Assembly: GCA_026936335.1 (NCBI GenBank)
Contig: JAPMXV010000042.1
Coordinates: 186,001-250,000, forward strand
DNA length: 64,000 nt
Reading direction: 5' to 3'
Source of the DNA: Mantamonas sphyraenae STR306
Taxonomy: Eukaryota; Protista; CRuMs
The notes under the pieces are model-generated. The model was not told where the DNA came from. It did no database searches and worked only from the letters and a program-made list of their open reading frames with translations. The position numbers were made by a program, and so were the translations under genes. Shown here piece by piece: positions 9,719 to 62,574 of the stretch. Within the stretch, counting starts at the first letter, position 1; every line of letters starts with the position of its first letter.

Positions 9719-9850
9719 CGTTTTCGGTTTTGGAACTCCTCGACCGCGACGACAAGAGGTGTGTGTTTTGGTCGACCTGGCGCCCAGTGGCGACCAAAAG
9801 CACGGTTCTCCAGTTTGGGCTTCCAGCAGACACAGTCACATACAAAAAGG

Positions 9851-27125: not shown

Positions 27126-27235
27126 TAAGGGAAATGTAGCACACGTGGTGTGGGTGATTGTGCGTGTGTGTATGTGTGTGTGCGGTGCGATGCGATGCTC
27201 GACAAAACAAAAAACCCGACCCAGCTGCTGCCCTG

Positions 27236-30200
27236 ATGAGCAATCACAGATCGTCAGCAGCGTCGCGTATGCGCTACGTTGGCAACTACTCGTTGAGCAG
27301 CACCGTGGGCGAGGGCAGGTACGTTGCGTGTGTGTGTGTGTGTGCGTGTGTCTTTGCCAAGAAGTTTCTAAAGTGGCAGACGCTTGTCGCCACCCCCCAC
27401 GCATGCTCCGTTTTGCGGCCCACACTCACACGGCCAGGATTACGACACACTTGGCCCCACGTGTGCGATGGCGATGGACGCACACAGCTTTGGTGTGGTG
27501 AAATTGGGCACTCATCTGCCCACAGGCGAAAGGGTATGGACGGGGAGGCGGCGTCAATTTTCTTCTTCTGCGTCTCCTCACTTTGCTTCCAGAGTTCCTC
27601 TCCCGCGTGGCCTCGGCCCTCTTTGGTTCGCCTTTTTACTCACACCCACACCCACAGGTCGCTGTCAAGATTCTGGAGAAGGACAAGCTTTCGGACAGCA
27701 CAGAGAACGATCGGATCCAGTGAGTTGTCCGTGGAACACGGCGAGAGGAGGCTTTTTGGGCATCGGTCACTTTCGTTCGGTCGTTTTGCCCTCCATGGGC
27801 TTGGGTTAGGTGCATGTGGGAGGCATGACTGCAGGCCCCGGTGGGCTGCCATGTGTGGCGTGGCACCGGTTGTGCGTATTTTGCATGCTGCGTGCGTGTG
27901 CCAGGCTTCCAAGTGCAGTTTCGCTCGTTGGCAGGAACGCACAACAACAACAACGGTTCACGTTTTCGCCCTCGTGTCGCTTGCATGGCGTGTCTGTGCG
28001 TGCTTAACTTGCATGTGTGCGATGTGTGCCGCCTCGCAACGCATGTGGTCTGGGTGTGTCTGTGATTCATGTCGTTGGTGGAGCGTGGCGGGTGTTGTTC
28101 CGCCACACGCGTCGCCCTGTGTGTGTCCAAGCTGACCCAAATCGCCTCTCGCACAAACGCGAAAACCGTGCAGGAGGGAAATCTCCATCATGAGGCTACT
28201 GGACCACGAGAATATTGCCAAGCTGATTGAGGTCATCGATACGTCACGGCACCTGTTCCTGGTGAGTGGAGAAAGCGGGTGTGTGGGAAGGCAGGGGCAA
28301 GGAGCGAGAGAAAAAGCCAAGGAGGGGCGGATGGAGGGGTGGGGCAAGAGGGGATAAGGACAGAACTTGGCCATGGATTGTGTCATGCCATGCTGACATG
28401 AGACATGTACATGCACACCCCCACGCACACATCGACACAGGTGATGGAGTACTGCAGTGGAGGAGAGTTGTTTGACTACATTGTGGCGCACCAGCGAGTG
28501 AAAGAGCACGAGGCACGCAAGCTGTTCCGTCAGATTGTGTCGGGCGTCTCGTACTGCCACAAGCACGCCGTCATCCACAGGGACTTGAAGCCCGAGAACC
28601 TGCTGCTGGACGGCAAGAAGAACATCAAAATCATCGACTTTGGGTTTGCCAACGTGATGGCTCCCGACGGTCTGCTCAAGACGTTCTGCGGCTCGCCGGC
28701 GTACGCAGCCCCGGAAATGGTGGAGGGACGCGAGTACACAGGGCCGGAAGTGGACATCTGGAGCATGGGAGTGATCCTGTATGCGCTCCTGTGTGGCTAC
28801 TTGCCGTTTGACCACGCCAACATTGGCAAGTTGTACCGTCTCATCCTTGCGGGCAAGTACTCGTGCCCGGAGTTCATGTCCGAGACGGCCGAGGATTTGC
28901 TGTCCATCATGTTGGTTCCCACACCCAGCGAGAGGGCGACCATTGATCAGGTGATTGAACATCCGTGGATGAATGAGGGCTACGACAGCCTGTGTGTGGA
29001 TCTGGAGGCGTTCAAGGAGCGGGAGGTGGATGTGGATCGGCAAATTGAGGCGCAGCTGAAGGAGATGGGCTTTGACACAACCCAACTGGAGAGTGACCTG
29101 GAGCAGCTGAAGCACAACCAGGTGACGGCCACGTACTACCTGCTGAAGAACCGCAAGGGGGGCAGCAACGCAAAGCCTGTGGACACGCAGATGACGCAGG
29201 GAGAAGACCCGTACGAGGACGCCTCGTCGGACGATGACTACGATGAAGATTACAGCACGGACGAAGAGTACGACTCGGATGGGTCGTACTCGGGTTCGAG
29301 TGACGGGGAGGAAGGCAGCGGAGGGATTGGCAAGAAGCGACAGGACTCGAAACGCAACGTGACGGCGGCCGCGTTGAACATCACCATCACCAAGGGTGGG
29401 CCGATGAGTGGACGTCGCAAGAAGAACGCACCGTCGCTGGGATTCGATTCGATTGCAGAGGAGCCGCTGACGGAGGAAGAAGAACCGCCGGAGGAGGAGG
29501 AGGTGCCGCCGTCGTCGTCGAACACACACGCGGGAGCTGCGGGCGACTTGACCATTCCGCCGTTCAAGGGGGCGTCTTCGGGCAAGGGCAAGTCGTCGTC
29601 GTCGTCGTCGGGTTACCGTGCGGTGATGGACAAGGAGAAGCGGGAGGAGGAGGAACGCAAGATGGACGAGCTGTACGCCAAAATGGCCAACTTTCACTTT
29701 GGTGGCTCGGACGACAATCAAGAGGGCGAGTCGGGCAGCAGCGGAAGTGGCAGTGGCACCGTCAACAGCCTGGCCAACACAGGCCCCGCACGCAGGCGCT
29801 CCAAGTCGATTTCCGTCACCGCCATGCGCATGGAGGAGGAGGAAGAGGCGGCAGCGGCGGCGGCGGCGGCAGCAGCAGCATCAGCAGCGTCGTCATCGTC
29901 ATCCTCCTCCTCCTCCTCGTCGTCGTCGTCGGCAAACGGCGAGCTGAGCGAGGAGGAACTGCTTGCCATGGGCAAAGGACGTTCGCGTACACACAGTGTG
30001 GACCCACAGGCGGCAGCCAAGATTGCCGTGCGTTTCATGTCGTCGATGACGGCCAACCTGCGCGAGGTGAAGGGCGCGTTCAACGTGGACACCACGTCGT
30101 CCAAGTCGCCCGAGTACATGGTGGCCGAGATCCAACGGGTGTTGGGCGAATCGCAGGTGGAGAGCAAACAGGACGGGAACCTGTTTCGTTGCTACCATGC

Positions 30201-30342
30201 CACCAGCAGGGTGCGCTTCGAGGTCGAGGTGGTCAAGATTCGCAACCTGCCCCTCAACGGCATCCGCCTTAAACGTGTGGCCGGCGACACCTGGAGCTTC
30301 AAGAAGCTCATGCAGTATCTGACAAGTCAGATGAAGATGTGA
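27236..30342 (+). CDS. CAMKL-family Ser/Thr kinase (MARK/AMPK-related) with UBA-like and C-terminal KA1 domains
   Basis: GEGSFGVVK (spliced), VAVKIL, HRDLKPEN, DFG, TFCGSPAYAAPE, HNQVTATYYLL, KA1 end VRFEVEVVKIRNLPLNGIRLKRVAGDTWSFK; four 5' introns. Confidence 0.93.
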
Positions 30343-30486: not shown

Positions 30487-32326
30487 ATGTCCAAGTACAG
30501 CGCTGTGTGTGGGTTGATGCTCATCGCCCTGCTTGCTGCAGGCGTGATGGCCAACATGGAAGAGTCGAGCTCGGAAGTGTCAAGCGCAGAGGTGAGTTCC
30601 CAGTAGAGCGTCGTAAGATTGGGCGATTGGGCCTTTGCATGAAGTTTTGTTGATTGTGTGCGGCTTGCCAGTGTATTTGTCTGCCTGTGGTTGCTCTGCG
30701 ATATGGATGGAGACCGCGTGGAGAGCGGCAGGGGTGTTTGCGCGCTGACTCGCATGAGACCCGGAATCCCCCCTTTTTTTTTCCGGCGGGTCGCAGCTTT
30801 CGGCGAGCGACGCCAGCGATGCCAGCGATGCCAGCGACGCCAGCGACGCCAGCGACGCCAGCGACGCCGAGGAGGAGGTGTACGATGAGGAGGCGCAGGA
30901 AAAGGTGGAGCAGGTCAAGCGATCATACACGCCGCAGCGGATCAAGGATGCGGTGCGCAAGGTGATGTCGTTTGTGAAGGACGCAGACTCTGCGTTTCAG
31001 CAAGCGCGTGTGATGTACGAGTCACTGCGCGCGCAGGGCCTGCGTGTCCACCTGTCGGATATGGTGCGCATGTTCTTCCACAAGCTGAAGCAGCAACGCA
31101 AGATGCATCGGTTGCCGAAGAGTGCGTCTTCGCAACGGAGCGATGACGAGGAGGTGTGGTCCGACGACGAGTGGGACGCAGAGGAGTTGGATGACGTGAT
31201 GGGCCAGGGCCACAACGCAGAGATTGCAGATGCGGACTTTTGGGGCCGTCGTCGCCGTCGCGGCTTTTTCCGACGCATTGCTCGTGTGGGACGTCGCATC
31301 GGCCGCTTTGTGGGCCGTGCGGTGCGTGGCATTGCGCGTGGCATCGGTCGCGTGTTTTCCAAGATTGGCAAGGTGGTTTCCAAGCTGGCAGCCAAGGTCA
31401 TGCCCCTGGTGGGCAAGATTGTCAACAACCCGTGGTTCTCGGGAATCCTGAACGTTGCGTCGTACTTTGTGCCTGGCCTGAGTGTGGTCAACACGGCGGT
31501 CAACTGGTTGCGTCAGGGCACGCAGCTGTTTTATGCTGTGGCAGGAGGTCAGCGTGCGCAGGTGCAGCAGATCACACACGAGCAGGCCAACGCCCAGGCG
31601 ATGGACATGATGGCCCTGGAGATGATTGAAGCCGCTGTGGTGCAGGCCAAGGAGCAGCGTGACTTCCGTCTGTACGATTTGATGAACGGACCGCGCTCGA
31701 CACCCGAGGTGCGCCACCACCTGCACTTGTTCCTGCGCCGCTACGGTGGCACGGACCACGGCAACGGCGTGTTGACATTCCGTTCGGATGCCAGCATGCA
31801 GAAGGCCGAGGGTGCGATGAAGCAGGCTGCGATGCAGCGCTGGAACCAGATGCAACCCCACTGCTACGAGAAGGACATTACGCTGGATTTCGACAGGCAG
31901 GGTGCATCGGTGAAGTGCAACGCAGGCTATGCAGTGACATCCGTGTGGAAGAGCGGCTGCAACGCTCTGTACTGCATCGAGAAGATGCGCTGCTGCGGCT
32001 GGAAGCGGGCTGCGGCCACGCGTCAGTACCGTGCCAACTGGGTGCTGTCCATGGACCGATCGGGATGGAGCCGATGCAACGGAGCGATGTCGGGTCTGGC
32101 ACGCTCCCATGGCGCTCAGCTGCAGAACCTGGAGCACGCGTACTGCACCGAGCTGCCGCTGAACGGCATGAACGCCATCGAGGTGAGCAACCCGTTTGCA
32201 GGCGGACCCGGCTGGAAGGGATGCCCCGCGGGGTACTTTATGGTGGGTATGCACCGTCGCGAAGGCGCTCCCGCTGGTCGCAGTGGTCTCACGGACGTCG
32301 ACAGTGCCATGTGTGTGTCCCTGTAA
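30487..32326 (+). CDS. Secreted protein: signal peptide, acidic pro-region, cationic amphipathic helix, C-terminal Cys-rich triple repeat
   Basis: MSKYSAVCGLMLIALLAAGVMA; in-frame intron 30592-30796; GRRRRRGFFRRIARVGRRIGRFVGRAVRG; CYEKDITLDFDRQG...CNALYCIEKMRCC, NWVLSMDRSGWSRC...LQNLEHAYC, GWKGCPAGYFMVGMHR. Confidence 0.8.
30806..30868 (+). repeat. 9-bp tandem repeat (AGCGAYGCC)n encoding (SDA)n
   Basis: About seven in-frame AGCGAC/TGCC units in exon 2 of the secreted protein gene. Confidence 0.9.
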
Positions 32327-32375: not shown

Positions 32376-32575
32376 GAGACGTGCATTGGATTGTGTGTGG
32401 GAGGGAGGTGGACGAGGAGGTGGAGACGGCTCTGGTGATGAACATGGAGGAGCGGGAGCGAATGTTTGAAGCCGGGTGCATGGAGGCATACGTGGAGGAG
32501 ATGGCGGGATGGAAGGGCTGGGTGACACTGCCGGACGAGGTGATGGAGCGTGTGTTGAAGTGGATGGTCGTGTGA
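32376..32575 (+). pseudogene. Orphan 3' fragment of an ankyrin-family paralogue
   Basis: DVHWIVCGREVDEEVETALVMNMEERERMFEAGCMEAYVEEMAGWKGWVTLPDEVMERVLKWMVV* is identical to the end of ORF 32648-36121 but has no upstream gene body. Confidence 0.85.
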
Positions 32576-33228
32576 GGAAGAAAAAAGAAGCGGGGATTGG
32601 TGCAACACGAACTCTTTTTGTGCAGTTGTTCAGCGGGGTGAGACGGGATGAACAGAGGGAACACGAGTGCCATGAGAGCGTGTGGACGATGGGGAAGCGT
32701 GGGCAAGATGATGGAAGTTTTGGGCGAGGACGGGGTGGATGTGAACGAGCAGGAGGAGGGAACGGGGAAGACGCTGTTGATGTGTGCGTGCGAAGGTGGT
32801 CGTGCAGACAAGGTGTGGGCGCTGTGCAAGGCGGGGGCGGATGTGGAGATGGAAGACTGGAGTGGGCGGCGTGCAGTGGAGTATGGGGTGGAGGCGGAAG
32901 CGTACGAGTGCGTGTGGGTGTTGGTAAAGTGCTTTGCAGGGAAAGAACTGGAGGGAGGGAAGAGTGGGCAGTGGACACGGAGCAGGGTGGTTGGAAGCGG
33001 ATGGCGGGTGTGGGAGGAGGGGGAGGAGGGACGGGAGTGGCTGCGTCGGATGTGCTATGGAGGAGGGAGCGAGAGGGAGCGACGGGTGGTGGAGTGGGAG
33101 GAAGGGGTGCACTTTGCAGTGGGGGAAGAGGAGGACATGTGTGTGGAGATGGTTCTGCTGATTGGGGAGGCAGAGGGGCTGGAGAGGGAGTGTGTGAGAC
33201 GGGTGGCAGAGTGGCTGACCGTGACCAA
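32376..33228 (+). repeat. About 853-bp direct repeat, copy 1 (ankyrin-gene 3' end + spacer + 5' constant region)
   Basis: Aligns by eye to 35922-36775 with only about a dozen substitutions and one indel. Confidence 0.95.
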
Positions 33229-36121
33229 AGGGACCGGAGCAAAGCGGGGCAGATTCCGCTCCGCAGCGGCCTCCCGTTCATCTGCAGAGGAGTTGCGGAG
33301 AGGTAATGTCACGTCTGTCGCTTCGAAGGGCAAGGGAGAAACAGAGCGAATGTCGAAGCTCGACCGCATCAAGCGACGGCAAAATCGGGCGGCGGCACAG
33401 CAAACGGTGACACCCACTCCCGCGCAGCAATTGCGTTTGCTGGTGCGGAAGGGCATGGCGGATGAGGTGAGTACATTGGTGAAGAAGGGATTCCAGACGC
33501 CGGAGTGGAAGGCAGAACTGGATGCATGCGTGTATGCCAGCGCAAGTCGGGGCGACGCCACATGCCTGCAGGTGCTGCTGGAAGCGGGTGCGAGCACTGA
33601 GCACATGGAAGGTGGACGGGGATGTGTGTGTGCAGCAGTGCGTGGAGGATCGGTGGCGTGTCTGCAGTTGTTGCTAGACGCGGGTGCGGATCCAAACGCT
33701 TGTGGGAAACGCACCACACCTGCGCTTTCTGAGGCCATCAAATCGGGCGATGAGGAAATGGTGCGCGTGCTATTGGGTTGTAAAGCGACGAGGGTGATTA
33801 CGGGTGACAAGGAGTGGCAACCGCTGGCAATAGCAGTCAGCTGTGGTTTGTCGGAATCTGTGGTGCGGGCCTTGATCGAGGCTGGTGCCCTGGTGAACAT
33901 GCGAGGCATGGGTGGGGCGAATGCACTTCATGTGGCTGTGCAGCAGGGAAACGCGAAGCATGTCAAACTGTTGTTGGAGCACGGGGCAGATGTGAACATG
34001 AGAACCAATGCCAATTCGACGCCGCTGTCGCTGGCAGTGATCCATGGTCACGCTGACATAGTCGACGTATTGTTGGAGGCCGGGGCGGATGCACACATGC
34101 ACGAGGGAAACAGAAGAGGTCGCTCGCTGTTGGCCGAGGCGGCGTCCATGGGGAATGTCGAGTGCCTGCGCGCGCTGCTGAAGCATGGGTCGATTGTGGA
34201 CGGGGAGTGGGGAGGGGACATGGATGTCCAGAGTGTGCTGATGCTGGCAGCTCAGAAGAATGTGGAGTGTGTTGAAGCGCTGATCGAAGCAGGGGTCGAT
34301 GTGAACGCATTGGGGCCGTTGGGGGTCACTGCCGTGCAAACTGCGGCCAGCCTGGGCAATTTGAGTGTGGTGAAGGCATTGGTGAATGCGGGTGCACATC
34401 TGGACAAAGTCAATGACCACGGAAGGCCTCCGTTGGCCGAAGCAGCGAGGGCAGGGCATTTGGAGTGTGTGCGATGGTTGCTGCAAAAGGGGGCAAACGT
34501 GGATGCAGTGGACAGCGAAGGGCGCACAGCACTGCTGGACGCTGTGAGGAGCTCGCACGTGGAGGTGATAGAGATGCTGTTGGAGTCTGGGGCGGACCCG
34601 GAACTTGGAAATGCCGAGACCTTCCCGTTGTGTGAAGCGGTGATGTGCAGGCGAGAGGACTGCGTGCGTGTGCTGTTGGGACACGGAGTGAATGTCAACA
34701 GGACAAAGGCGCGCAACTTCGGCCGCTATCATCAAGAACAGAGTGTGCTAGAGTTGGCAGCAGCACAAAGACAACTCGCTGTTGTTCAGTTGTTGCTGGA
34801 AAGCGGGGCCCATGTGCGTGACATTCCGGTGGTTCTCGCTGCAATTCCGCATCGTTCATGGGATCTCAAGGCCGGGGCGGAAGCGGCGGAGATTGTTCGA
34901 TTGCTGCTCGCAGCTGGAGCCAGTGCGACGCTGAGCGATGGGTACTCGTCACCCCTGGTGAAAGCTGTGCAAAGCGGATCTTTGGAGTTGGTGCAAATGC
35001 TGTTGGAAGAGGGGGTGCCGGTTACGGAGGATTCGACCGGGAGCTTGAGTGGGTTTGGTCGGTCGAGTGTGATGGAAGTTGCGATGCGCACTGCGTCCAA
35101 CTTTGGACCAGAAATACCAGCAGCGCTCTTGGATGCAGGAGCAGACCTTTCCACGCTGGAAGTGCCTTCAGGCATGTGGCATCTGGCAACGAAGGCTGTG
35201 CAACTTGCGCGTGGCACGATTTCGGTGTTGGCTCTCCAATGTCCGCCTGTCTCGGCAGAGGAGATCACAGAACTGGCTGCTGCTTTGCGCCGCCGTCCGA
35301 CCGTGGTGGAGTCATTGTGGCTAAATGATGTTTCACAGAGAGGGAGAGACAAATGGGAGGTGGGTGGGCTGTTGTCGCAAGTGAGGCATGTCAAGATCAA
35401 TGTGAAGCGGGACACCCTTCGGGCAGATTCGCTGGTGGATAAGCTTACGGATATGGTGTGTGCTCCCGGCAGTGCCGTGCGTGAGTACACAGTGATTGGA
35501 GAGCTGGGAGACGTGAGCAACTTTGTTCGTCGATGCGGAGAGGCATCGTGCAATCTCGAGTACGTGTGTGTGAACACTCGGTTGGGAAAGTGTGAGGTGA
35601 GCGAGGATAACTGGCAGCTTTGCTACGTCGTGGACAACTTTGGGGCGTGGGATCGGACACAGGTGCTGCAGCGGAACCGAGAAGCTGCGCAGGCGATGCT
35701 GCAGAGTGCCATGGCAGGAGACGTGCAAGGGGTGAAGAGGGCACTGGATCTGGGAGTGAGCATCAACAGCAGAGCGGGTGAGCTGAAGGACGACACTGTG
35801 CTGGAATGTGCATTGCAGGTGGGAGAGGGTGGACGAGAGCTGCTGACGTTGGCCAGGGAGGAAGGAGCGCGTGTGACACCGAGGGCGGTTGAATTGGCAC
35901 ATGAAGGTGGTGGGTGGAGGCGAGACGTGCATTGGATTGTGTGTGGGAGGGAGGTGGACGAGGAGGTGGAGACGGCCCTGGTGATGAACATGGAGGAGCG
36001 GGAGCGAATGTTTGAAGCCGGGTGCATGGAGGCATACGTGGAGGAGATGGCGGGATGGAAGGGCTGGGTGACACTGCCGGACGAGGTGATGGAGCGTGTG
36101 TTGAAGTGGATGGTCGTGTGA
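32648..36121 (+). CDS. Intronless ankyrin-repeat protein A (1157 aa): constant N-terminus, long Ank array, LRR-like segment, terminal Anks, C-terminal F-box-like motif
   Basis: Repeated ALHxA...G...V.LLLE.GADVN units; ends LPDEVMERVLKWMVV. Confidence 0.9.
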   Translation: MNRGNTSAMRACGRWGSVGKMMEVLGEDGVDVNEQEEGTGKTLLMCACEGGRADKVWALCKAGADVEMEDWSGRRAVEYGVEAEAYECVWVLVKCFAGKELEGGKSGQWTRSRVVGSGWRVWEEGEEGREWLRRMCYGGGSERERRVVEWEEGVHFAVGEEEDMCVEMVLLIGEAEGLERECVRRVAEWLTVTKGTGAKRGRFRSAAASRSSAEELRRGNVTSVASKGKGETERMSKLDRIKRRQNRAAAQQTVTPTPAQQLRLLVRKGMADEVSTLVKKGFQTPEWKAELDACVYASASRGDATCLQVLLEAGASTEHMEGGRGCVCAAVRGGSVACLQLLLDAGADPNACGKRTTPALSEAIKSGDEEMVRVLLGCKATRVITGDKEWQPLAIAVSCGLSESVVRALIEAGALVNMRGMGGANALHVAVQQGNAKHVKLLLEHGADVNMRTNANSTPLSLAVIHGHADIVDVLLEAGADAHMHEGNRRGRSLLAEAASMGNVECLRALLKHGSIVDGEWGGDMDVQSVLMLAAQKNVECVEALIEAGVDVNALGPLGVTAVQTAASLGNLSVVKALVNAGAHLDKVNDHGRPPLAEAARAGHLECVRWLLQKGANVDAVDSEGRTALLDAVRSSHVEVIEMLLESGADPELGNAETFPLCEAVMCRREDCVRVLLGHGVNVNRTKARNFGRYHQEQSVLELAAAQRQLAVVQLLLESGAHVRDIPVVLAAIPHRSWDLKAGAEAAEIVRLLLAAGASATLSDGYSSPLVKAVQSGSLELVQMLLEEGVPVTEDSTGSLSGFGRSSVMEVAMRTASNFGPEIPAALLDAGADLSTLEVPSGMWHLATKAVQLARGTISVLALQCPPVSAEEITELAAALRRRPTVVESLWLNDVSQRGRDKWEVGGLLSQVRHVKINVKRDTLRADSLVDKLTDMVCAPGSAVREYTVIGELGDVSNFVRRCGEASCNLEYVCVNTRLGKCEVSEDNWQLCYVVDNFGAWDRTQVLQRNREAAQAMLQSAMAGDVQGVKRALDLGVSINSRAGELKDDTVLECALQVGEGGRELLTLAREEGARVTPRAVELAHEGGGWRRDVHWIVCGREVDEEVETALVMNMEERERMFEAGCMEAYVEEMAGWKGWVTLPDEVMERVLKWMVV

Positions 36122-36775
36122 GGAAGAAAAAAGAAGCGGGGATTGGAACAACACGAACCCCTTTTTGTGCAGTTGTTCAGCGGGGCGAGACGGGATGAGC
36201 AGAGGGAACACGAGTGTCATGAGAGCGTGTGGACGATGGGGAAGCGTGGGCAAGATGATGGAAGTTTTGGGCGAGGACGAGGTGGATGTGAACGAGCAGG
36301 AGGAGGGAACGGGGAAGACGCTGTTGATGTGTGCGTGCGAAGGTGGTCGAGCAGACAAGGTGTGGGCGCTGTGCAAGGCGGGGGCGGATGTGGAGATGGA
36401 AGACTGGAGTGGGCGGCGTGCAGTGGAGTATGGGGTGGAGGCGGAAGCGTACGAGTGCGTGTGGGTGTTGGTAAAGTGCTTTGCAGGGAAAGAACTGGAG
36501 GGAGGGAAGAGTGGGCAATGGACACGGAGCAGGGTGGTTGGAAGCGGATGGCGGGTGTGGGAGGAGGGGGAGGAGGGACGGGAGTGGCTGCGTCGGATGT
36601 GCTATGGAGGAGGGAGCGAGAGAGAGCGACGGGTGGTGGAGTGGGAGGAAGGGGTGCACTTTGCAGTGGGGAAAGAGGAGGACATGTGTGTGGAGATGGT
36701 TCTGCTGATTGGGGAGGCAGAGGGGCTGGAGAGGGAGTGTGTGAGACGGGTGGCAGAGTGGCTGACCGTGACCAA
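35922..36775 (+). repeat. About 853-bp direct repeat, copy 2
   Basis: Near-identical to 32376-33228. Confidence 0.95.
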
Positions 36776-39242
36776 GGGTAGTGGGGCGACGAAGAAGAAA
36801 GTGGCAGGCCGCCCGAACAGGCAGACGGCGTTGCTCGTGGCTGTGGATCGGAGGAGCAAGGAGGAGATGGTTGAGATTCTGACGCAGAAAATGGATGGAA
36901 AGGAGTTGGGAGATACGTGGAAAAGCGACGTGCAAGAAGCGCTCTTGTTTGGAGCGGCTGCAGACGACGGTGAGCTCGTGCAGCTGGCCCTGGATGCTGG
37001 AGCTGAATTGAACGGCGTCTCGACGGACAAGCCGTCTGTGTTGATGAAGGCGTGCGAGATCGGAAGCGAAGAGCTGGTGGCGATGCTGTTGGCTGCCGGA
37101 GCAGACCGTGAGGTGAAAGATGCACGTGGATGGACCGCGCTGATGTTTGCTGCACGTGGAGGGCATGCTGGGTGCATGAAGTTGATGATTGATGAAATGC
37201 GAGTGGACGGGCTTTCACGGGATGGGGACACGGCCTTGAAGTGTGCAGCAAGGAGTGGGAACGCCGAGTGTGTGCGGTTGCTGTTGGACTATGGCGAGTT
37301 CACAGGGCCCAGTGTAGAAGGGCTGCAAACGCCGATGATGTTGGCAGCCCAAAGAGGACACAAAGAGTGTGTGGAGATCCTCCTGGCGGCTGGATCGTGG
37401 GTGAACTACGTCGACTCTGATGGATGGACCGCATTGCTTGCAGCGGACAGCGGAAATCATCAGCAGATTGTGAGCATGTTGATCGAAGCAGGGGCAAATC
37501 CCAATGTTCGATTCAAAGGCTGGAATCTGCTGTCTCGTGCAGCGGCAGCCGGACACGTGCAGACCTTGCGCGAAGCCGTTGCAGCTGGGGCCAATGTGGA
37601 TGCAAAGAATGCCAACGGGTCCACCGCAATGCACATGGCATGGCTCAGTGGCCAAGTAGAGTGTGCAGAAGTGTTGCGTGCGGGGGGAGCGAGCGCAGAT
37701 GATGCAACGTTCATGATGTTCAGTGCATTAGTCAGTGGCGAAAGTGCTGGTGCATCCTCGCTGAAATCGCTCTCGGATGAGGCGAAGCTGGCCATGGCCT
37801 GTGCCGTTGAACTAGGCAATGTGGCGCTAGTGCGCACTTTGCTGGAACTGGGTGTGGATCCAGACAGCATGCTGAGTGAGGGAGTGAGTGTGTTGACGTG
37901 TGCAGTGGCGCAAAGGGGCGTGAATTCGACGGCAATTGTCAAGTTGCTGTTGGAATCTGGCTCAGACGCACGTCGGGACCCAACGGCGCTTTCATGCGCT
38001 GCGAGGCATGCAACGTCGGATGTCGTGGAGCTGCTACTGGAGCACGGAGCGGATCCATCCGCATGTGATGGTGGTCTGATGGTGCAGTGGATCAAGAGGC
38101 GAGCGGGCGACGAAAAGTGCACTGTTGGGATGCTGCTCGTTGCTGCTGGCGCAGACGTGAGCGACGTGTGTCTGGGAAACGAAGCAATGGGGGTGCGTAT
38201 GGCGGCAACGGCCGTGGCTGTGGCAAAGACTCCTGTTGCGAGGGTGAACTTGAGCAAGCAAGGCAGCACGGAGAGGCTGGAGATCGATCTTGGGGAGCTG
38301 GTAGAAGCCATGGAAGAACGACCGGGAATGCTGGAAGCTGTGGAGCTGGACCATGTGACGATACGAGAACAGAGGAGGGCAATTGAGTTGTTGACAACTC
38401 AGTTGGTTGAACTGAGCATGCGTGACAGCGATGTGGATTCTTTGGGATGGTTCAGCGTGGAAGGGGTCGTGACGGGGCGCAAGATGTCACTGAGGGTGCT
38501 GGACTTGCGCAAGACAGTGATTCCGATGTGGGTGAGGATGCAGATGCGAAGGTTTGTGCTGGAAGAACCTCGCACACGACTGGAGCGCTTCTTGGTTGGC
38601 GCCTGGTTTGAGAGGACAGCGGTGCAGAGCAGCGAGTATGCAACGGTGTCGAGAGAGAATTGGTGCCTGTGTGAGCTTTACACCGGGATCAACGGGTTCA
38701 ACAGCGTGCGAGGAGAGTCTGAAGAGGTGCTGAACCGGAACAGGGAAGCGGTATGGAAAATGCGCGAGGCCGCACGAAACGGGGATTTGGATGGGGTGCG
38801 GGAGGTGGTTGGCTGGGGAGTGGACATTGATTCGCGTGGTGGAGAGTGTCTGAAGAACGGGAGGAAACTGCGGTTGGATATCGGTGACGGTTTGCAAAGG
38901 GATGGGCGTTGGACAGTGCTGGAGATAGGCGTGGAGACCGGGAACGAGGAGCTTGTCGCGTTTGCGCGTGCACGGGGGGCTCGTGCATCAACTTGGGCAG
39001 CGAGGCTGGTGGAAAAGAAGGGCATTGGGTGGAGGCGAGACGTGCATTGGATTGTGTGTGGGAGGGAGGTGGACGAGGAGGTGGAGACGGCCCTGGTGAT
39101 GAACACGGAGGAGCGGGAGCGAATGTTTGATGCCGGGTGCATGGAGGCATACGTGGAGGAGAAGGAAGAGTGTGAAGACTTGTGGTGGACCCTGCCAGAT
39201 GAGGTGATGGAGCATGTTGTGATGTGGATGGGCAGACAATGA
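36195..39242 (+). CDS. Intronless ankyrin-repeat protein B: same constant N-terminus, different core, LRR-like segment, C-terminal F-box-like motif
   Basis: First about 194 aa almost identical to protein A; GWTALMFAARGGH-type Anks; LVELSMRDS and LRVLDLRKT; ends LPDEVMEHVVMWMGRQ. Confidence 0.9.
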   Translation: MSRGNTSVMRACGRWGSVGKMMEVLGEDEVDVNEQEEGTGKTLLMCACEGGRADKVWALCKAGADVEMEDWSGRRAVEYGVEAEAYECVWVLVKCFAGKELEGGKSGQWTRSRVVGSGWRVWEEGEEGREWLRRMCYGGGSERERRVVEWEEGVHFAVGKEEDMCVEMVLLIGEAEGLERECVRRVAEWLTVTKGSGATKKKVAGRPNRQTALLVAVDRRSKEEMVEILTQKMDGKELGDTWKSDVQEALLFGAAADDGELVQLALDAGAELNGVSTDKPSVLMKACEIGSEELVAMLLAAGADREVKDARGWTALMFAARGGHAGCMKLMIDEMRVDGLSRDGDTALKCAARSGNAECVRLLLDYGEFTGPSVEGLQTPMMLAAQRGHKECVEILLAAGSWVNYVDSDGWTALLAADSGNHQQIVSMLIEAGANPNVRFKGWNLLSRAAAAGHVQTLREAVAAGANVDAKNANGSTAMHMAWLSGQVECAEVLRAGGASADDATFMMFSALVSGESAGASSLKSLSDEAKLAMACAVELGNVALVRTLLELGVDPDSMLSEGVSVLTCAVAQRGVNSTAIVKLLLESGSDARRDPTALSCAARHATSDVVELLLEHGADPSACDGGLMVQWIKRRAGDEKCTVGMLLVAAGADVSDVCLGNEAMGVRMAATAVAVAKTPVARVNLSKQGSTERLEIDLGELVEAMEERPGMLEAVELDHVTIREQRRAIELLTTQLVELSMRDSDVDSLGWFSVEGVVTGRKMSLRVLDLRKTVIPMWVRMQMRRFVLEEPRTRLERFLVGAWFERTAVQSSEYATVSRENWCLCELYTGINGFNSVRGESEEVLNRNREAVWKMREAARNGDLDGVREVVGWGVDIDSRGGECLKNGRKLRLDIGDGLQRDGRWTVLEIGVETGNEELVAFARARGARASTWAARLVEKKGIGWRRDVHWIVCGREVDEEVETALVMNTEERERMFDAGCMEAYVEEKEECEDLWWTLPDEVMEHVVMWMGRQ
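39027..39161 (+). repeat. Third, partial copy of the constant 3' block
   Basis: GGGTGGAGGCGAGACGTGCATTGG...GCATACGTGGAGGAGA matches about 35912-36046 closely, then diverges. Confidence 0.9.
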
Positions 39243-39272
39243 AAAACCGATGGTCGCAGCAGCAGGCACGTG

Positions 39273-40499
39273 TCACTCGCGTACCCACCGCCCCACAGAT
39301 GCCTGATCATCACACTGACACCTGCGTACGAACCAGTTTCGCTTCCACTCGTCCTTGGTGGTGTCTGTGACTGGCATGGTTGTCTTGAAATTCTGCAGCT
39401 GCGCGTACTGCCGGAGCACAGCGCCCGTGTAGCAAGGGATGCGGTGTTTGAGCAAGTAATCACGCGCAAACACTTGAGCGTTGCGCACTATCCGCTGAGC
39501 AGCGGCGGGATTGTCGAGGGCCCAGCCGACGCGAGCGTTCAAGTTGGTGGCGTTGGCTGTGAGAGAAAACGGGACATAGTGGGTCCAGGGCTGGAGCATT
39601 GGATAGAAGAACTCCAGGTCGGGACTGTCGACTTTAAAGACGAGGCTGGATCCGCTAAGCTGTGTGCGTAGACGCGTCGAAGCACAGTTGCCGGGCAGGT
39701 GCGCCACAAACGCGTAGTTCTGCTGCTCCAGGGCGGTCAGAGGCGGTTTTCCATGTGGCACATCTGAGAGATCGCCAATGCGGCTTGATCCGCGGTGAGT
39801 GAATCCCACGTCGAGCAAGGGACTGTATGCCCATCGCATGATCCGCTGTCTGGTTTGCTCGTGCGGCCACAGGGCCCCGCGCCACACAAGCTTTGGGAGC
39901 TTGCGGTGCCAAGGAATCCAATGTGAAGGCCCCAAAGTTTGGATGTCGCCATAGGAGATGGGAATGTCCACATAGCCGTTGGTGCGACAGAAACTCAGCA
40001 CAGGTGGTGGCGGTCCCTTTCCGTGGCTGCCTACGTCTCGCGAAACAGGCCAATCACCGGATGAAAGGACAAGATCCAAGTCGGGCAGCCTTGCGCGACG
40101 ATGAACTTGCATGAGCACGTCGAGGAGTTGCTCAACGATGCCCTCGCCGTTGCCAAACTTTCCGCGGGTGAACATTTTCCCGTCCACCACGCGGACACGC
40201 AGGTTTCGGCTGTCAAGAGCTTCTGCAGCGTCAACCATGTCCTTTGTAATCCCGCCGGCGTGGATCCAGGGCCTGAAAAACTCGAGCACAACCGGAGAGG
40301 CCAACTGTTGTGGGTCGCAGTCGTTTGCCACCAGCCAGTCGTCGAGAGAGAGACTCGGTGATGGCTGGGGGTCTGTTGCACAGCGACAGTCCCCTCGTTC
40401 ATCTGCATGTGTTGTTGGTGGGGGCATGTGCACTGTGAGGAGGGCAAGCAGGAACAGAAGGCTGCCAAAGAGGACAGGTGCCCAGTGCCGAAACCTCAT
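39273..40499 (-). CDS. Glycosyltransferase family 90 (CAP10 / POGLUT-KDELC-like), type II membrane protein
   Basis: N-terminal TM, LPDLDLVLSSGDWP, PWHRKLPKLVWRGA, PGNCASTRLRTQLSGSSLVFK, EFFYPMLQPWTHYVP, AQRIVRNAQVFA. Confidence 0.88.
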   Translation of the reverse strand: MRFRHWAPVLFGSLLFLLALLTVHMPPPTTHADERGDCRCATDPQPSPSLSLDDWLVANDCDPQQLASPVVLEFFRPWIHAGGITKDMVDAAEALDSRNLRVRVVDGKMFTRGKFGNGEGIVEQLLDVLMQVHRRARLPDLDLVLSSGDWPVSRDVGSHGKGPPPPVLSFCRTNGYVDIPISYGDIQTLGPSHWIPWHRKLPKLVWRGALWPHEQTRQRIMRWAYSPLLDVGFTHRGSSRIGDLSDVPHGKPPLTALEQQNYAFVAHLPGNCASTRLRTQLSGSSLVFKVDSPDLEFFYPMLQPWTHYVPFSLTANATNLNARVGWALDNPAAAQRIVRNAQVFARDYLLKHRIPCYTGAVLRQYAQLQNFKTTMPVTDTTKDEWKRNWFVRRCQCDDQASVGRWVRE

Positions 40500-40576
40500 T
40501 TCTTCGGCAGCGTTTGTCCTGGATGCGTGGGGGGAGGGATGGGAGGGATGGGACAGTGCAGTTCATTGAATCCAAA

Positions 40577-41468
40577 CTATGTTTCGCCACTGCTCTTGTT
40601 CTTGCGATCCTTGCCCATGGAGCTCATGGTCACCTGCTTGTACGAGTCGGGAACTGGAAAGAGGTCGTCGTTGAGCTGTCGATACGAGTCGTAGTTGGCA
40701 AAGGTGACCTGGGCACTGACGGTGGGGACAATGGGTATGTCCAGGCGCACAGGAAAGCCTGCCTGGTCGCCCGGAAACTTGAGCTCGATGAACCGTTGCA
40801 GGTTCTGAAAGTGGGTGCTGGTGGGCGACAGGATTTCAAACAGGGGCATGACGTCTTCCACTTCCAGTGGAAAGTTTTCGCTCATCCACACGGTGGACTT
40901 GAACGATTTGGTCCACGAGCGCTCGCTGGGTGTGTTCTTTGCCTTTTTCTTTTTGCCGTACCACGTTCTGCCTGAAGACGACGACGACGAAGAGGCTCCA
41001 CCACCCGACTGTGCGTCATCGAATTCGTCGTGGGCATCCACAAACACGTCCCCGTCCTCGTCGACGATAGGATCACCGTCGTTGGCTCCCTCGACGTCTG
41101 CGTGCTCCTGTCCACCCTGCTTCACTTCCGCAAACAGCCGCTCCACCTCTTCAGCGCTCATGTCGCTGTCTCCTTGCATGAGTTGCTCCATGATCTCCAT
41201 GCGCCTCAGCTGCTCCTGCCTCCTTCGTTCCACGGCCTCGCGCTCTTCCTGGCTCATCTGTGCGTCCTCCTGTGCGTCCAGTTGCTCCAACCTCCGGATG
41301 GTCTCCACGTCCATGATGCCTTCACTGCCTTCCACCTCATCCAGCAGCACAAATCCGTCGTCGGTGGTATCGTCCTGGCTGCTTGATCCTTTCAGCGCTG
41401 AACTCGATGCAGATGAGGATGCGGAGAGATGTGATGAAGATGAAGATGAGACTGCAGATGCAGACGCA

Positions 41469-47517: not shown

Positions 47518-47608
47518 TCATCTGAAAATCAACGACCCCGTCCCCCCTCCACTGTGCACGGATTGAAGTCAATTTCATCGAATCTCATCTGAAAATCAAC
47601 GACCCCGT
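47518..47608. repeat. Short duplication of the spastizin stop-codon region
   Basis: TCATCTGAAAATCAACGACCCCGT at 47518-47541 and 47585-47608. Confidence 0.9.
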
Positions 47609-50600
47609 TCCCCCTCCTCCACTGCTACTTCCCACCCCCCCACCGCCTCCACCCCCATCTCCTCCTCCTCCACTCATCCCGCTGTTCTGCTCAATAAACT
47701 TTTGGCAAAAGTCGGCCACCTTGCTGCCAACCTTTTCTGCCTCCTCCTTCACCAGCATCACATCGGCCAAGTTGCGTGTCTTGACCGCAATCAAATACGC
47801 CGCTTTCAGCTTCCGGCAGGCCAGACACGCCTTGACCTTCATCCTGTCCGAGTTGAGCTTGGTCACAAGCTTCTCCGCCGTTTTCCCGTCGTTCAGCTCG
47901 TTCGCGTACACTTCGATCGCACCTGTCAGCAGGATTTCGTCCCAGTCGCGGTCACTCACTGTCGTCTTGACCTCATCCATCAGTGCGTTCAGCTTGCTTG
48001 TCTGCTTGCGACGCACAAGGTCTTTCAGTGCGTTGACATAGATCGTTGTCACCGGCAGCCTAAAGTCCTGCACCACACGGTACGCCAGGTCAAAGTTGCT
48101 CAGAAGCAACAGTTGCTGCGCCACTGCACACTTCACCTTGTCGTTCGCAAACAGACTTGCCTGGTAAAAGTCCACCGCCCGCTGCTCGTGGAAAAAGTCC
48201 GACACCTCCATCTCCAGGTTCACTGTGCGAATGTACTTGCTGATGTCGGCGTCTGACAGCAACGTCGTGGCCATGGCTCCACCCTGCCCGCGTGTTGACG
48301 TCTGGTGCACCATCCCTTCCAGCAGGTGCTTGCGCGAGTTTTCCAGATATGTCCGTCGCTGATCGTAGTCCGTGATGTTCAGGTACAGCTTGATGCACGT
48401 CAGACCAGCGCGCACATAGTCCCGCATTGCGCACTGCACCTGGTACAACACGTCAAAGTACTTGGACGCGTTCAGGAAACGGCACACCGCAAGCAGGTAG
48501 TGCTGCACACTGCCCAGCGTGCTGTCCACCTCCCGCAGTGCGTCCAGCATCGTGTCCACCAGCGACCGGCTCAGACAAAACTCCAGGATTTCGTCCACAA
48601 ACAGACTTGCCGCAAGACCATTGTCCACCACACGCCGCACAGCCTCGCCCACTCGCCAGTGTCGCGTCAGGAATGCAACCTGCATACGGTACGTACCGTA
48701 CGTCTCCAAGTAGTACAGGCACTCCCGTGTTCGCACCTCATCCAAGTTGCTCCTTGGTTCCCGCTGCACTGTCGCCACAACGCTTGTGGACGAGCCGTTG
48801 TCCATCTTCTTTGTGCCAAACACGTGCAGCGCCTTCAGGAACGACTCTTGCGAAAAGTCGTCGTCCGAATCGCTGTCCTCTTCCACCACCGTCGTGTCTC
48901 GCTTCAGATACACCTGCCGTGCCAGCGCTTCGTACTGCTGCTTCACATGCTCCAGCGTTGTCGGCCGCCTGTACTCCAGCGTGTTGACAATCTCCACCAG
49001 CGTACGAGACGTGCTCTCCATACTTGCCGACTTGATCGACCCCATCCTGTCCTGCATTCGAGCAGAGTATGCACTTGCACGCATCGCCACAGACGACGAC
49101 GAGGAGGAGGACGAAGACGAGGACGAGGACGACGATGACGACGCTGTGTGCATCCCTTGTCCTCCGTAGTCGCTGTTGTTCGACTTGTGCGATGACACAC
49201 TGTCCAGCGAGCCCGAACGCTCCCTTCGCGGGCGCCCGTCCTCCCTCAGCTCCTCCGCTGCCTCCAGAGGCGTCAGACAGTACCGAAACTTCTCGCGTGC
49301 CTCTTCATACTTGCCCGAAGACAACAAGGCAAAGCCCCAGTGCGACCACACGGGCTCCGAGTCGATGCCACACTTGGTGGCCACCTCCACAGCGATCTCA
49401 AATTCTTCGTGCCGGATCAGCTGGTCACGCACAATGCGTGCTCGGTTGGGGTTGCTAAAATCCGACAGCGTCACCGAGATGTGCGTGCTTGCACTTGCAT
49501 TCAGAAGCTCCTGCCACAGCTCCACATAGGACAGGTACGTGTCGCAGATGGACACGCCTCCGTTGCCATACTCCAGGTCCTTCATGAATTGCATCTTGCC
49601 GTACAGCAGCAGTTGCTGCACCATGTTGATGATCAAAAACTCGTCCGCACTGTCCTCAGCCTGCAGTCGCTGCGACAGTGTGTCGCACAGCTGCAAACAC
49701 GCCTGCCCCGCCTGGTATGGTTTGCACAGATCCAAGAACGCCTGTGCAAGGTCAATGCTTGGTGCCTCGTGGAATTGGTGCATCTGGCGCAAGTTGTCAT
49801 CTGCGTCCTCGTTGCCCGTGAGCACCACGTAAAAGATGTCCTCCGGCATGTTGCTTGCGAACCGCGCTGCCATTTCGTCAAACTCCTCCATGTCCGCTTG
49901 CAGGTTCGTCGTCAGACCTCGTTCATCGTCGCCATCCTCTGCGACACCTCGTCGTCGCAGTCTGTCCATGATCTTGCTGCTGCGTCGCTTGCTCGGCGTT
50001 CCCTCTCCTCCTCGCTCGTGCCCTGCCGTCGTGTCCGAAAACGACACAGACGGCAGCGACGACGTCGACGACATCCCTGCACCTGGCCCACTTCCCGTAT
50101 TCCCACTTGCCAGGCTCGAGCCGTATCCCGCGCCAAGCTCGCCAAACGCTGTGGTCGCATTGCGTTGGCTGCTGCGTGTGTTGCCGTTTGCCAGGGACGA
50201 CGACCCTGTGCCTGTGCCTGCGCCTGCAAATGCGCCATTGTTGCTTTGCGACAAACTCAGAAGATCGGTGGCGTTCAGAGCGCCGGCCTTGGGAAACTCG
50301 ATGGCCTTTTGGGCAAACTCAATGCACAGCCTGTCGTTGCGTAGTTGTGGCAGAGCCACAAGCAGCTGTGCAACCACAGCCGCCTGTTTGGTCATCAAAA
50401 GGTTTTCCACAAGCACGTGCGGCTTGGCCATCAGGTGATCCAGCCGTTCCTGGTACTCGGGCGGCAGACGCACAAGCACCTGCAAACCCAGCTCCACCTC
50501 GCGCAGCTCCGCCTCGTCCTCTTTGCTCACGTGCTCCATTAGGTTGGACAACATGAACTGCACCAGGAACAGCTTGGATGTGTCCGACACACTCGAGCTC

Positions 50601-53600
50601 AGCATCGCTTTGCAAATCGCCACACTCTGTCCGTCCAGCTCCACAAGCCTCTGAACAGCCATGGCCGAGTCGTGGTGGATCGAAAGTACATCCGTGATGT
50701 ACCGTTGCTCAATCAGCATATTCAGGTCCTGGCCTTCGCGCGGGAAAAACGCCACAATCTTGCGCGCCAGAGCATACTCGCCCATTTCAACCAGATGCCT
50801 GACAATCTCCTCTGCCCTGCGCATGCACGCCTTCTCAATAAGCTGCCACGTGGCCCACCGTGTGGTCACTTCCATGATGCGTGCGTACAGGCGGCTCAGC
50901 TCGAGGCGCCGTTCTACCTCTTCGTACGTCTCGGTGTTGCTGTGCTCCCTTGCCAGCTGGCTGCGGCACATGCTCAACAAGTCGATGCATCGATCTACGC
51001 TGTAGTACTGGTGGCACTGCAACACAACCTTGGCCGCCACCAGCGGGTTCTCCTTCAGTCTCCGCGCGTACCGCCATGTCTTGCTCTTGCTGCCCGGGTA
51101 CTCACGAATCACACGCACCAGCAGCGAGTCTGGAGCTCCATGTGACAGTTTCGAGTCGGCCAATTCAAACGCTTGCTGCACCTCCCCCATGCTCGCCAGT
51201 TTGCTGACCACTCGCTTGTAGAACTCCTCCTCCTTTGCGTACTCCTGCTGGTTGAGCAAGTCGAAGCACTCCTCTTGTTCTGCTGTCAGAGGTTCCAATG
51301 GCCCACTTGTCCCGCCGCCTCCTCCACTGCCTGCATCCCCTCCGTCGCTTCCTCTCCATCGCGCCTCGCGTTCCATATCCTCCACCTCCCTTGTCTCCCT
51401 TGTCTCGCCGCTCCCGTCCTCCTCAGACAGATCCTTGTCCGCCCACGGATTGATGACCGTGTTTTCCTCTTCGCGCAGGTTCTCCAGACTGCTGCGCTTC
51501 TTGAATCTCTTTGTCAGCGAGCTCAGCCTGCTCTTTGCAGTCGGCGTGCTGCCGAGCAGCGCGGGCTCATCCTCGCCCAGCAGCGGCCCCTCGTCTTCAT
51601 CCTCCTCTCCATCCTGGCCGGCTTCACGTCGCGACCCGTTCTCCTCCTCAAATCCCACCTCAAAGGGTCCGTTCTCCACCGAGTCCGACGTGCCGGCACG
51701 CTCTCCCTTGCGCTTGCCATACCTGGGTCGGTCCTCGTTGTCGCTTTGGCTGCCTGCATCTCCCTCGCTGTTCCCTTCGTCAAACAGCGTCCGGTGCACC
51801 GCCCGTTTGGCCATTTTCTGGGCCATCGATCGCCTGGGCATCGCATCGCCTCCAGCCATCGAAAGCAGGTCCTGCTGCTCCTCGTCTGCCTCCATGCCAC
51901 GTACACTCTGCCCAGGGTCGCCACTGGCATACTCCACTAGCTCGCCCACCGCACGCATAGCCGTCCGCCGCGACAGCTGCAAGAAGGATCCCGAGAACAG
52001 GTCAAAGTTGCGTGCCCTGTGCTTCACCCAGCGATGAAGCACAGGATACGCCTCCGAGTTGCGGCTGGCGAATTCAATCACCTCTTCGTTCAGGGCCGAG
52101 CCTGGGAAGCGCACTGTGCACGCGAGGGCAGCCAGCAGCGGCGAATACTTGTCCAGATACTCCACAATGTCCATGCTCAGCGTGTACTCCTGCGGCTGCT
52201 GCTGCTGTTGCGCAGAGGGCGATGAGGCGCTCGCCAACAGTCCACCACCTCCCTGCGGTGTCGAGGCTGACATGGGCCGTGGCGATGAGGCGTCACCATG
52301 CAGCGACAGCGGCGTGACGGGGGAAAAGCCCCCGTCCAGGCTTGCCACACCCATCTGCTTCTGTGGCGTCTGTGCCAACGAGGACGGGAATGGACTGGCC
52401 GGAATGGCCGTGCTTAGGATGATCGACACCAGGTCCACGTCCATCAGCGCTGCCAGGCTCTCTGCCTGCTGGTACGACTTTCGCTCAAACACAAGCTGGT
52501 TCAAGATGTCTCTGGGCGACTGTTGCAGCGCGCCAAAGTAGTCAATCTTCTGTCGGCTTGCACCTGCGCCAGCCAGCACACCTCCATCGTCACCCTCGCC
52601 TTCTGCCGCGCTGCGCTGCTCCTCCAGAATGTTTCCCATGGACAACAGGTAGCGCAAAAAGTGTGCCATGTACGCTTCCTTGGACACGCCCGTCCAGAAC
52701 GATGCAAAGCCCGTCACGTTGCCTGTGATCATGGTGCGCGTGCTCAGCGCTGTCGATCCGGCCTCGCTGGGCGCCATTTCGCTGCCTACACCGCCTGTCC
52801 GCCACCCACGGACACTTCATCCCACTCGTCCACCGAGCTGAGCTCGCCTCGCAGTGGACGAGTCTGGTACGTGCGGCGAAAGTTGCTAAACTCTGCAATG
52901 AGATCGCGCAGCTGCATCTCCGTCACAAGGGAGCCCATGACGTCGGTCAACTTCACCAGCGCCTCTTTCATCAGCTGGCGGCTGCGTAGGAAGCTCTGCA
53001 ACTCTGTGTAGTCGCTGGGCACGGTTTCGATGCGTGACAACACCTGTGGCAGCGGCTGTTCTGCATCTTCCAGCAATAGTTCCCAGCAGCGCATCAGCGA
53101 CTCGAAATACTCGTGCACTGTCGCTTGCATGTCTGTGCTGGTGCCTCCTTCTTGGCTCTGTCCGTCACGCTCGTCGTTGGCGTTGCGCCCTCCCGCATTT
53201 CTCGATGCCTGCTGGGCGCGAAGTCTCTCTTCTGTCAGTTGTTCCACTCGCACAGAGTACAGTACGTCGTCCAGTTGCTCCAGATACTCGTGTGCACGCT
53301 CCAGTTGTGCGCCGACCTCCTTGCGGTCCTGTTCGTCGCCCTGGCTGGGAGCGGCAGCGTACAGCATGTCCACGCACACACAAAACGCCTTGACGAGATC
53401 GCGCTTCTCCAGCAACGCCACAGCTTGCAACGGTTGGTTCGACTCATTGTACTGTGCCAAGCTACGGTGCATCTCCTGGGCCACGTCCACCTTGGAGGCC
53501 AGCTCGCCCGATTCGATGCCGTAGAACTTGATAATTTCCTTGGCCCGTTGGTAGTCGTCGCTGCGCAAGCACATGTTGATCAACGTCTCGGGCGAAGACA

Positions 53601-61959: not shown

Positions 61960-62119
61960 CGGAAAAGCAAAGAAAAAAATCAGGTGCGTGTGTGAGCGCA
62001 TGGCATGTGTGTGGTTGCAGTGTCTGGGGATGATTGCGAGAGGAGGGCGGTCATGGGCAGAGGGAGCAGGGTGTGCGTGTGGCATGTGCACTGACAGGCG
62101 TTTTGGCGCGTTGTACAGG

Positions 62120-62574
62120 ATGAGCGGCAAGGCAGCAGCAAAGCAGGCGTCGGGCTTCATGGCCAACTACCACCGTCAGTACATCGCCACTGGCTCGGGC
62201 ATGCCCGTGTGGCATGTGATGGGCATTGTGGCACCCATTGGCTACGCCGTCAAGATGACCCGCAAGCGTAAGTGGTGGGAGGAGGAGGAAACAGGGCGTG
62301 CATTGGCTTCTCCACCGGCTCGTTTCCACGCGCCGACCCTCTTGCGCACACAGCACACGCTGCGACGCAATGGTGATGGCAGGAAAGGGGTGGGTGGGTG
62401 TGGCCGCCATGTACATATGTGACTACGTGTGTAGCATGCGGTGGGGATGGTGTGTGTGTGTACAAGAGGCTAGAGAAGGCGTGGCAACTGACCCAATCCG
62501 CGCTCGGAAATCGCCCCGTCGCCCCGTTGACACCACGTTGACCGATTGCAGCCTCCAACAGCGAACACCACTGA
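62120..62574 (+). CDS. Mitochondrial ATP synthase subunit f-like
   Basis: ANYHRQYIATGSGMPVWHVMGIVAPIGYAV resembles Atp17/ATP5MF; inferred intron 62268-62551 gives ending PSNSEHH*; probable 5'UTR intron 61984-62118. Confidence 0.6.

Follow-up and report, generated by a model that had tools for sequence, protein, structure and literature searches.

Near-identical ends around anciently diverged cores in a tandem ankyrin gene pair of Mantamonas sphyraenae: probable recent copying between paralogues

How do two neighbouring genes come to be nearly identical at their ends and in the gap between them, while their central parts can no longer be aligned as DNA? This question is raised by a tandem pair of ankyrin-repeat genes in the protist Mantamonas sphyraenae STR306, here called gene A (positions 32648-36121, + strand, 1157 codons) and gene B (36195-39242, + strand, 1015 codons from the ATG). 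The pair lies in a 64,000-nt stretch of contig JAPMXV010000042.1 (assembly GCA_026936335.1, positions 186,001 to 250,000 of the forward strand), referred to below as the window, which is nuclear DNA from a compact eukaryotic genome (59% GC). The answer that we favour, with a probability of roughly 0.6, is that A and B are ancient tandem paralogues whose ends and intervening gap have recently been overwritten by copying.

The identity of the gene ends was assessed by self-BLASTN of both the locus and the whole 64-kb window. Positions 32376-33231 and 35922-36778 matched at 98.4% identity over 857 aligned columns, in agreement with an initial annotation of this DNA, which had described near-identical blocks composed of a gene's C-terminal end (C block), a spacer and the N-terminal start of the next gene (N block). 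In a base-by-base alignment the two copies of this 857-nt block differ by 13 substitutions and one 1-nt indel; one of these differences falls in the C part, five in the 72-nt spacer and 5' leader, and eight in the N part. The first copy starts with C0, an orphan C block (32376-32575, + strand) whose 200 nt correspond to the last 65 codons and stop of gene A. It continues through spacer copy 1 (32576-32647, + strand, 72 nt), which is purine-rich and contains a T-run, a GTGCAG and a leader with an in-frame TGA at 32639-32641, and it closes with N block copy 1 (32648-33231, + strand), the beginning of gene A. The second copy lies at the junction of the two genes. Here the C block, C1 (35909-36121, + strand, the last ~70 codons of gene A), stands in its native context and is colinear with the transition from the core of gene B to that gene's own C block; it is followed by spacer copy 2 (36122-36194, + strand, 73 nt) and by N block copy 2 (36195-36778, + strand).

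Both edges of the block are abrupt, with identity lost within a few bases. As the initial annotation had recognised, the left edge precedes the codons for DVHW/WRRDVHW and the right edge follows those for WLTVTK. The tract edges fall in Gly-rich or basic linkers. Apart from the 857-nt pair and its two matches to a third C copy at the end of gene B, BLASTN detected no repeats in the 64 kb, and neither BLASTN nor TBLASTN found any further copy or fragment of the block in the window besides C0.

The regions between these blocks have a very different history. As bounded by the BLASTN repeats, the cores span 33232-35921 (2690 nt) and 36779-39025 (2247 nt); when the full C blocks are set apart, core A covers 33232-35908 and core B 36779-39023, both on the + strand. 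No BLASTN match between them was obtained at word size 7, consistent with the earlier observation that they do not align as DNA. In a codon alignment of A and B, amino-acid identity across the cores is 16-53% and third-position identity ~0.2-0.4, against a chance expectation of 0.33, whereas over the first 195 codons and the early part of the C block it reaches 0.9-1.0. Since third positions agree no better than chance, the cores are saturated at synonymous sites and diverged anciently. The cores also differ in ankyrin number, as had been proposed, with ~16-17 repeats in A and 12-13 in B by motif spacing.

Divergence has not erased the relationship between the two genes. Past the right edge of the block, A and B are still homologous yet diverged (KGTGAK.. 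versus KGSGAT..), and the stretch just upstream of the C block is likewise homologous but diverged. Because their C-terminal 320 residues are 41% identical and have no other relative, A and B are genuine paralogues of a lineage-specific family rather than unrelated ankyrin genes. They also share an atypical codon usage (33263-35914 and 36810-39035): third-position C is 0.18-0.19, compared with 0.24-0.43 in 15 other open reading frames (ORFs), and third-position A + T is raised in both, which accounts for the strong GC skew (+0.3 to +0.4) over 32-40 kb.

Substitution rates place the two components of the genes far apart in age. The N block copies differ at a rate of 0.040 per synonymous site (dS) and 0.0088 per non-synonymous site (dN). 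Their five synonymous and four non-synonymous changes, set against a neutral expectation of ~1:3.5, indicate that both copies are under purifying selection (dN/dS 0.22). C0 and C1 differ at a single position in 195 nt (dS 0.027), and the spacer copies differ at 5 positions in 72 nt. Simple tandem duplication is excluded because dS is 0.03-0.04 in the blocks and the cores are saturated, which upholds the argument of the initial annotation on this point. Its further claim that the constant blocks are homogenised also stands, since the synonymous sites and the non-coding spacer are near-identical as well. As the shared blocks, synonymous sites and spacer included, are far younger than the cores, the block ends must, on the sequence available, have been copied between units by gene conversion or templated repair.

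The three C copies differ in how much of this recent history they carry. In a gapped alignment, the copy that ends gene B, C2', matches C1 at ~90% identity (35911-36113 versus 39026-39231). The initial annotation had marked it as C', but it is not weaker evenly along its length: C2' is a mosaic. Its first part (39024-39161, + strand, 138 nt) is recently shared: over the 132 nt that were compared with C1 there are two differences, both non-synonymous. The remaining tail (39162-39242, + strand), the last 24 codons, is old and diverged, with a dS of ~1.8 relative to the tail of A, and retains the motif LPDEVME.V..WM. Given this mosaic structure, more than one tract was involved.

C0, in turn, is not the end of a gene, as had been assumed, but an orphan 200-nt fragment that begins 50 nt past the stop of a 482-aa ORF (30878-32326) unrelated to gene A. 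No ankyrin ORF lies upstream of C0. A comparison of the 78 nt 5' of C0 with the region upstream of C1, made for remnants of a third gene, gave no significant local alignment (p=0.13). A GAG/TGGAG microhomology is seen at the left junction of C0, which may also have lost 5 nt by slippage. The neighbouring 482-aa ORF is itself an orphan that belongs to no Pfam or NCBIfam family; its C-terminal half is Cys-rich, and one stretch is Arg-rich and amphipathic. It shares the frame of C0, with one TAA and 16 codons between them, which we take to be coincidence, and immediately 5' of it (30806-30868) is a perfect-looking 9-nt tandem repeat, AGCGACGCC, in 7 copies.

The best reading of these patterns is that one to three non-allelic conversion or templated-repair events of similar age took place recently. 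Long after the original duplication, a 0.86-kb stretch, made up of 200 nt from the end of one gene, the 72-nt spacer and 584 nt from the start of the gene that follows, would have been copied between two unit junctions, by non-allelic gene conversion or by templated repair of a break. A second, short tract of 138 nt would now link all three C ends. Two variants of this scheme, which differ in the direction of copying, fit the data. In one, the A-B junction would have been pasted 5' of gene A, replacing A's own N terminus, leaving C0 behind as a passenger and joining at its left end through the GAG/TGGAG microhomology; the A-B junction with C1 does sit in native context on both sides, and C0 does not. 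In the other, C0 would be the last remnant of a lost third paralogue whose junction served as the donor, and homology would stop at the truncated donor edge, which would explain why the tract edges coincide. In either variant, conversion would probably survive only in interchangeable end modules. Tracts extending into the target-binding cores would either not be initiated, with no DNA homology left there, or be selected against.

The local context of the edges bears on this reading in both directions. At the right edge, from N block to core, and for the C1/C2' pair, the tracts are flanked by colinear old homology; at the left edge of C0, the flank is the 3' end of an unrelated gene and not a colinear homologue. 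Several points weigh against conversion between the paralogues. On their left sides, the C0/C1 tract (edge at 35922) and the C1/C2' tract (~35909) end within 13 nt of each other, at a G-rich GGTGGTGGGTGGAGG-type (GGTGG-type) motif. If the events were independent and random, the likelihood of this coincidence would be a few per cent, and it calls for the second variant, a break-prone motif or a real module boundary. Pasting of the A-B junction would need a non-homologous left junction, and a lost third paralogue would need a deletion that ends exactly at the tract edge, with no third-gene remnant detectable.

The coincidence of edges is also the best point for the model put forward in the initial annotation, in which the C-spacer-N block would be a family-wide homogenised module that acts as a recombination handle by which cores are swapped, inserted or looped out, producing a diversifying receptor repertoire. 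The edges coincide within 13 nt in all three copies and lie in inter-domain linkers, the constant ends around a variable core are real, two or more separate tracts can be told apart, the proteins consist of nothing but ankyrin and leucine-rich repeat (LRR) binding scaffolds, and an orphan such as C0 would be expected as the left end of an exchange-built array. However, the 64 kb contain two genes and one fragment only, both genes are complete, and no silent or partial cassettes occur in the window. The recent tracts are moreover similar in age (dS 0-0.04), with no continuum of exchanges, and Pfam and PADLOC revealed no signalling or effector domain. The absence of any relative of the N and C modules from the sequence collections is uninformative about the same genome, yet it provides no support either. 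Taken together, we consider this model unlikely. Its genome-wide form, which we regard as rather a long shot, would make the 857-nt block the constant module of a family dispersed through the genome, with recombination at fixed edges near the G-rich motif (35909-35922) swapping ankyrin-LRR cores; if true, the family would constitute a germline repertoire of cytosolic binding proteins, cassette-like in logic. Nothing at the locus shows a programmed receptor-shuffling system, as opposed to the ordinary evolution of duplicated genes.

Other explanations concern the assembly, the gene models or the need for copying at all. The order [shared flank]-A-[shared flank]-B is the typical layout of a false haplotypic duplication, so that A and B could be cores of two extremely divergent haplotypes of one gene, strung in tandem through the C end of A and the orphan C0 of B; the 1.6% block divergence could then be heterozygosity, and the join could hide in the 132 nt common to all C copies. 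Such an artefact is decidedly improbable. The two alleles would have to be saturated at synonymous sites, with a length difference of ~140 codons, between flanks whose dS is 0.04, and conversion would not be dispensed with, since there would still have to be a real orphan C0 with a recently converted stretch of 132 nt at its start and an old tail. A false join would have only ~120 nt of overlap to work with, no seam is visible at the junction, which keeps the frame and has a proper stop, and the 64 kb contain no other duplicated segment. It is also doubtful that A and B form a single gene of ~2170 codons with an internal duplication, in which splicing of a 55-nt intron, with GTGAGG at 36118 as donor and GTGCAG up to 36172 as acceptor, would take out the stop and join C1 to the second N block. 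The sequence does offer donor and acceptor motifs and a T-run, the reading frame would be kept, spacer copy 2 has CGA where spacer copy 1 has the in-frame TGA, and an intergenic gap of 72 nt leaves scant room for a terminator and a promoter. Yet the introns that can be defined in the window are ~160-200 nt long with GTGAGT or GTACGT donors, GT dinucleotides are abundant in G-rich sequence and would be in frame by chance one time in three, other gene pairs are equally tight (30 and 77 nt), and each unit has its own ATG and stop; a fused gene would in any case alter the gene model and not the mosaic. The last explanation, that the ends were never copied and instead reflect very strong purifying selection, a structured RNA or a mobile element, finds some footing in the conservation of the end modules as protein, with the dN/dS of 0.22 in the N block. 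Conservation extends, however, to synonymous sites and to the non-coding spacer, and the block shows no Rfam hit and no excess of RNA folding (z -0.6 to +1.1), so constraint alone is inadequate, copying is the only adequate process and an account without it is very remote indeed. A long terminal repeat or transposon structure was rejected: the 2.7 kb between the repeats form an unbroken ankyrin ORF that stays in frame with the two repeats and is colinear with gene B, and no transposon genes occur there.

The proteins encoded by the two genes were examined for domains that might indicate their function. The units share an identical leader, and each has its own ATG and stop and a complete ORF; each ORF exceeds 1000 codons, where a stop would be expected every ~25 codons at the local composition. 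Pfam matched ankyrin families only, reaching 1e-99 for Ank_2 in gene A. From the ORF, Pfam, ankyrin motif spacing, AlphaFold and Foldseek, the order in gene A is N block, basic linker, ankyrin array, ribonuclease inhibitor-like LRR, ankyrin-like pair and C block, and gene B has the same architecture. The N block carries Ank_2 on residues 9-95, corresponding to two repeats, and its acidic Gly/Trp/Arg-rich remainder has no Pfam match.

The region after the ankyrin array was modelled with AlphaFold (residues 835-1157 of A, 323 residues), giving a mean predicted local distance difference test score (pLDDT) of 63. The first 143 modelled residues reach 70-89 and form alternating strand-helix units, an ankyrin-like helical pair follows the LRR, and the C block is modelled at low confidence. 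The best Foldseek matches of the LRR-like region were ribonuclease inhibitor and NLRP LRRs, that of NLRP1 included, although these were weak (E ~1e-3, template-modelling score ~0.3). With moderate support from this model, the region after the array may be identified as a ribonuclease inhibitor-like LRR. A single-sequence AlphaFold model of the N block was unusable (pLDDT 34).

Neither A nor B revealed an NTPase (NACHT or NB-ARC), an effector, a signal peptide-like start or an F-box or PRANC domain. PADLOC returned generic ankyrin matches only and NCBIfam only sub-threshold ankyrin-effector matches. Pfam gave no F-box or PRANC hit at any E-value up to 10, and no PDB sequence matched; all that is present is the 13-residue LPDEVME.V..WM motif at the C terminus. 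An F-box split between a C end (LPDEVME..WM) and an N start (ACGRW) was also rejected, as ACGRW lies inside a Pfam ankyrin repeat. The N block, compared with an index of 5.8 billion proteins restricted to those of 636-2025 aa, gave one weak ankyrin match. A profile of the C-terminal 320 residues, run without a length limit against 1.84 billion representatives, gave only weak ankyrin-like matches at profile positions 200-290. Neither block had a confirmed match among JGI metagenome contigs or IMG/VR. The best explanation of these results is that A and B encode a lineage-specific cytosolic protein of ankyrin repeats and a ribonuclease inhibitor-like LRR.

Comparison with known systems places the locus closest to conversion between duplicated genes. 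In the human G-gamma/A-gamma globin pair, the converted 5' part is sharply bounded. In Trypanosoma brucei, transfer of the GAF-A domain from TbrPDEB1 to TbrPDEB2 represents a domain-sized conversion between tandem paralogues (PMC2689650). The M. sphyraenae pair resembles the trypanosome case in the close, same-strand arrangement of the paralogues, in a near-identical tract amid divergence, in edges that correspond to domain borders and in the retention of function by both genes. It differs in that the tract runs across the intergenic spacer and takes in the 3' end of the gene before it, with an orphan 3'-end fragment left ahead of the first gene, and in that the unconverted parts are saturated and not merely diverged. 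Clustered spidroin (MaSp) genes combine conserved terminal domains and variable repetitive cores with intergenic conversion (PMC9779670). They too are clustered repeat-protein genes with exchanged termini and flanks and differing cores, but spidroin cores are internally homogenised low-complexity repeats, whereas the ankyrin cores of A and B show no DNA-level identity either internally or between the genes.

The likeness to cassette variation systems concerns layout only: constant 5' and 3' ends surround a variable core, and such ends could guide homologous exchange. Variation of this kind, as in Anaplasma msp2, Borrelia vls, Neisseria pilS, trypanosome VSG and lamprey VLR, involves one expression site, many silent partial cassettes and somatic or clonal change. 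In contrast, the present locus contains two complete genes with ATG and stop, and no silent cassettes in 64 kb. Among immune receptors with repeat sensors, NLR/STAND proteins use LRR, ANK, WD or TPR sensors, and plant R-gene clusters show mosaic exchange. Genes A and B recall these in their ankyrin and ribonuclease inhibitor-type LRR scaffolds, their C-terminal repeat sensor, their tandem pairing and their patchy exchange; unlike NLR/STAND receptors, they contain no recognised NACHT/NB-ARC or effector domain, and the Foldseek matches are weak.

The genomic surroundings are those of a gene-dense nuclear locus. The neighbouring genes include a MARK-type kinase with KA1, an ANKRD13-like gene, a GT90 glycosyltransferase, an ATG27/CIMR protein, a ZFYVE26-like gene, GCP4, a TFIIB/BRF-like factor, a PTEN C2 domain protein, a Rieske oxygenase and a 2339-aa LRR protein. 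The closest matches in the protein collections are at 26-30% identity for GT90 and 34-38% for GCP4. Some genes are separated by only 30-80 nt. Gene B and the convergent GT90 gene have 30 nt between their stops (39242-39273), and 77 nt separate the GT90 start from the ANKRD13-like stop (40499-40577); with spacing this tight, the untranslated regions of these gene pairs are likely to overlap.

GT-AG introns of ~160-200 nt exist in the window. The MARK/KA1-type kinase (27158-30342, + strand) has several 5' GT-AG introns, for example ~28237-28443 with a GTGAGT donor, and these hold (GT)n and CA-rich tracts; the genome is thus compact but not intron-free. The giant LRR gene (9761-17538, + strand) comprises the 2339-aa ORF and an upstream LRR exon across a ~160-nt intron near 10612-10770. 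The gene has at least 28 matches to LRR_8 and adds a second repeat-scaffold gene of very large size to the window. At 47585-55524 (- strand), a 912-aa ORF (52786-55524) and a 1730-aa ZFYVE26-like ORF (47585-52777) lie 8 nt apart in different frames and together have about the size of a spastizin-type protein, so they may be one gene split by a frameshift, an assembly indel or an unusual tiny intron. The Rieske [2Fe-2S] oxygenase (60441-62166, - strand) shows a weak PaO-like C-terminal match, is divided into two overlapping ORFs by an intron with a GTACGT-type donor, and could be of the plastid type or the sterol-desaturase type.

The ankyrin pair thus presents a clean textbook pattern of patchy concerted evolution, in which a dS of ~0.04 stands beside saturation within one gene pair and the tract carries along an intergenic spacer and a passenger 3'-end fragment. 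For annotation it serves as a warning, as a repeat of this kind can lead assembly and gene-calling software astray. Ordinary unequal recombination between the direct 857-nt repeats could delete or duplicate the 3.55-kb unit, which would be a by-product rather than an established function. If the block were to flank many other cores in the same genome, the significance of the finding would be greater. For the family itself, the recently copied tracts mark the interchangeable modules of an orphan ankyrin-LRR protein.

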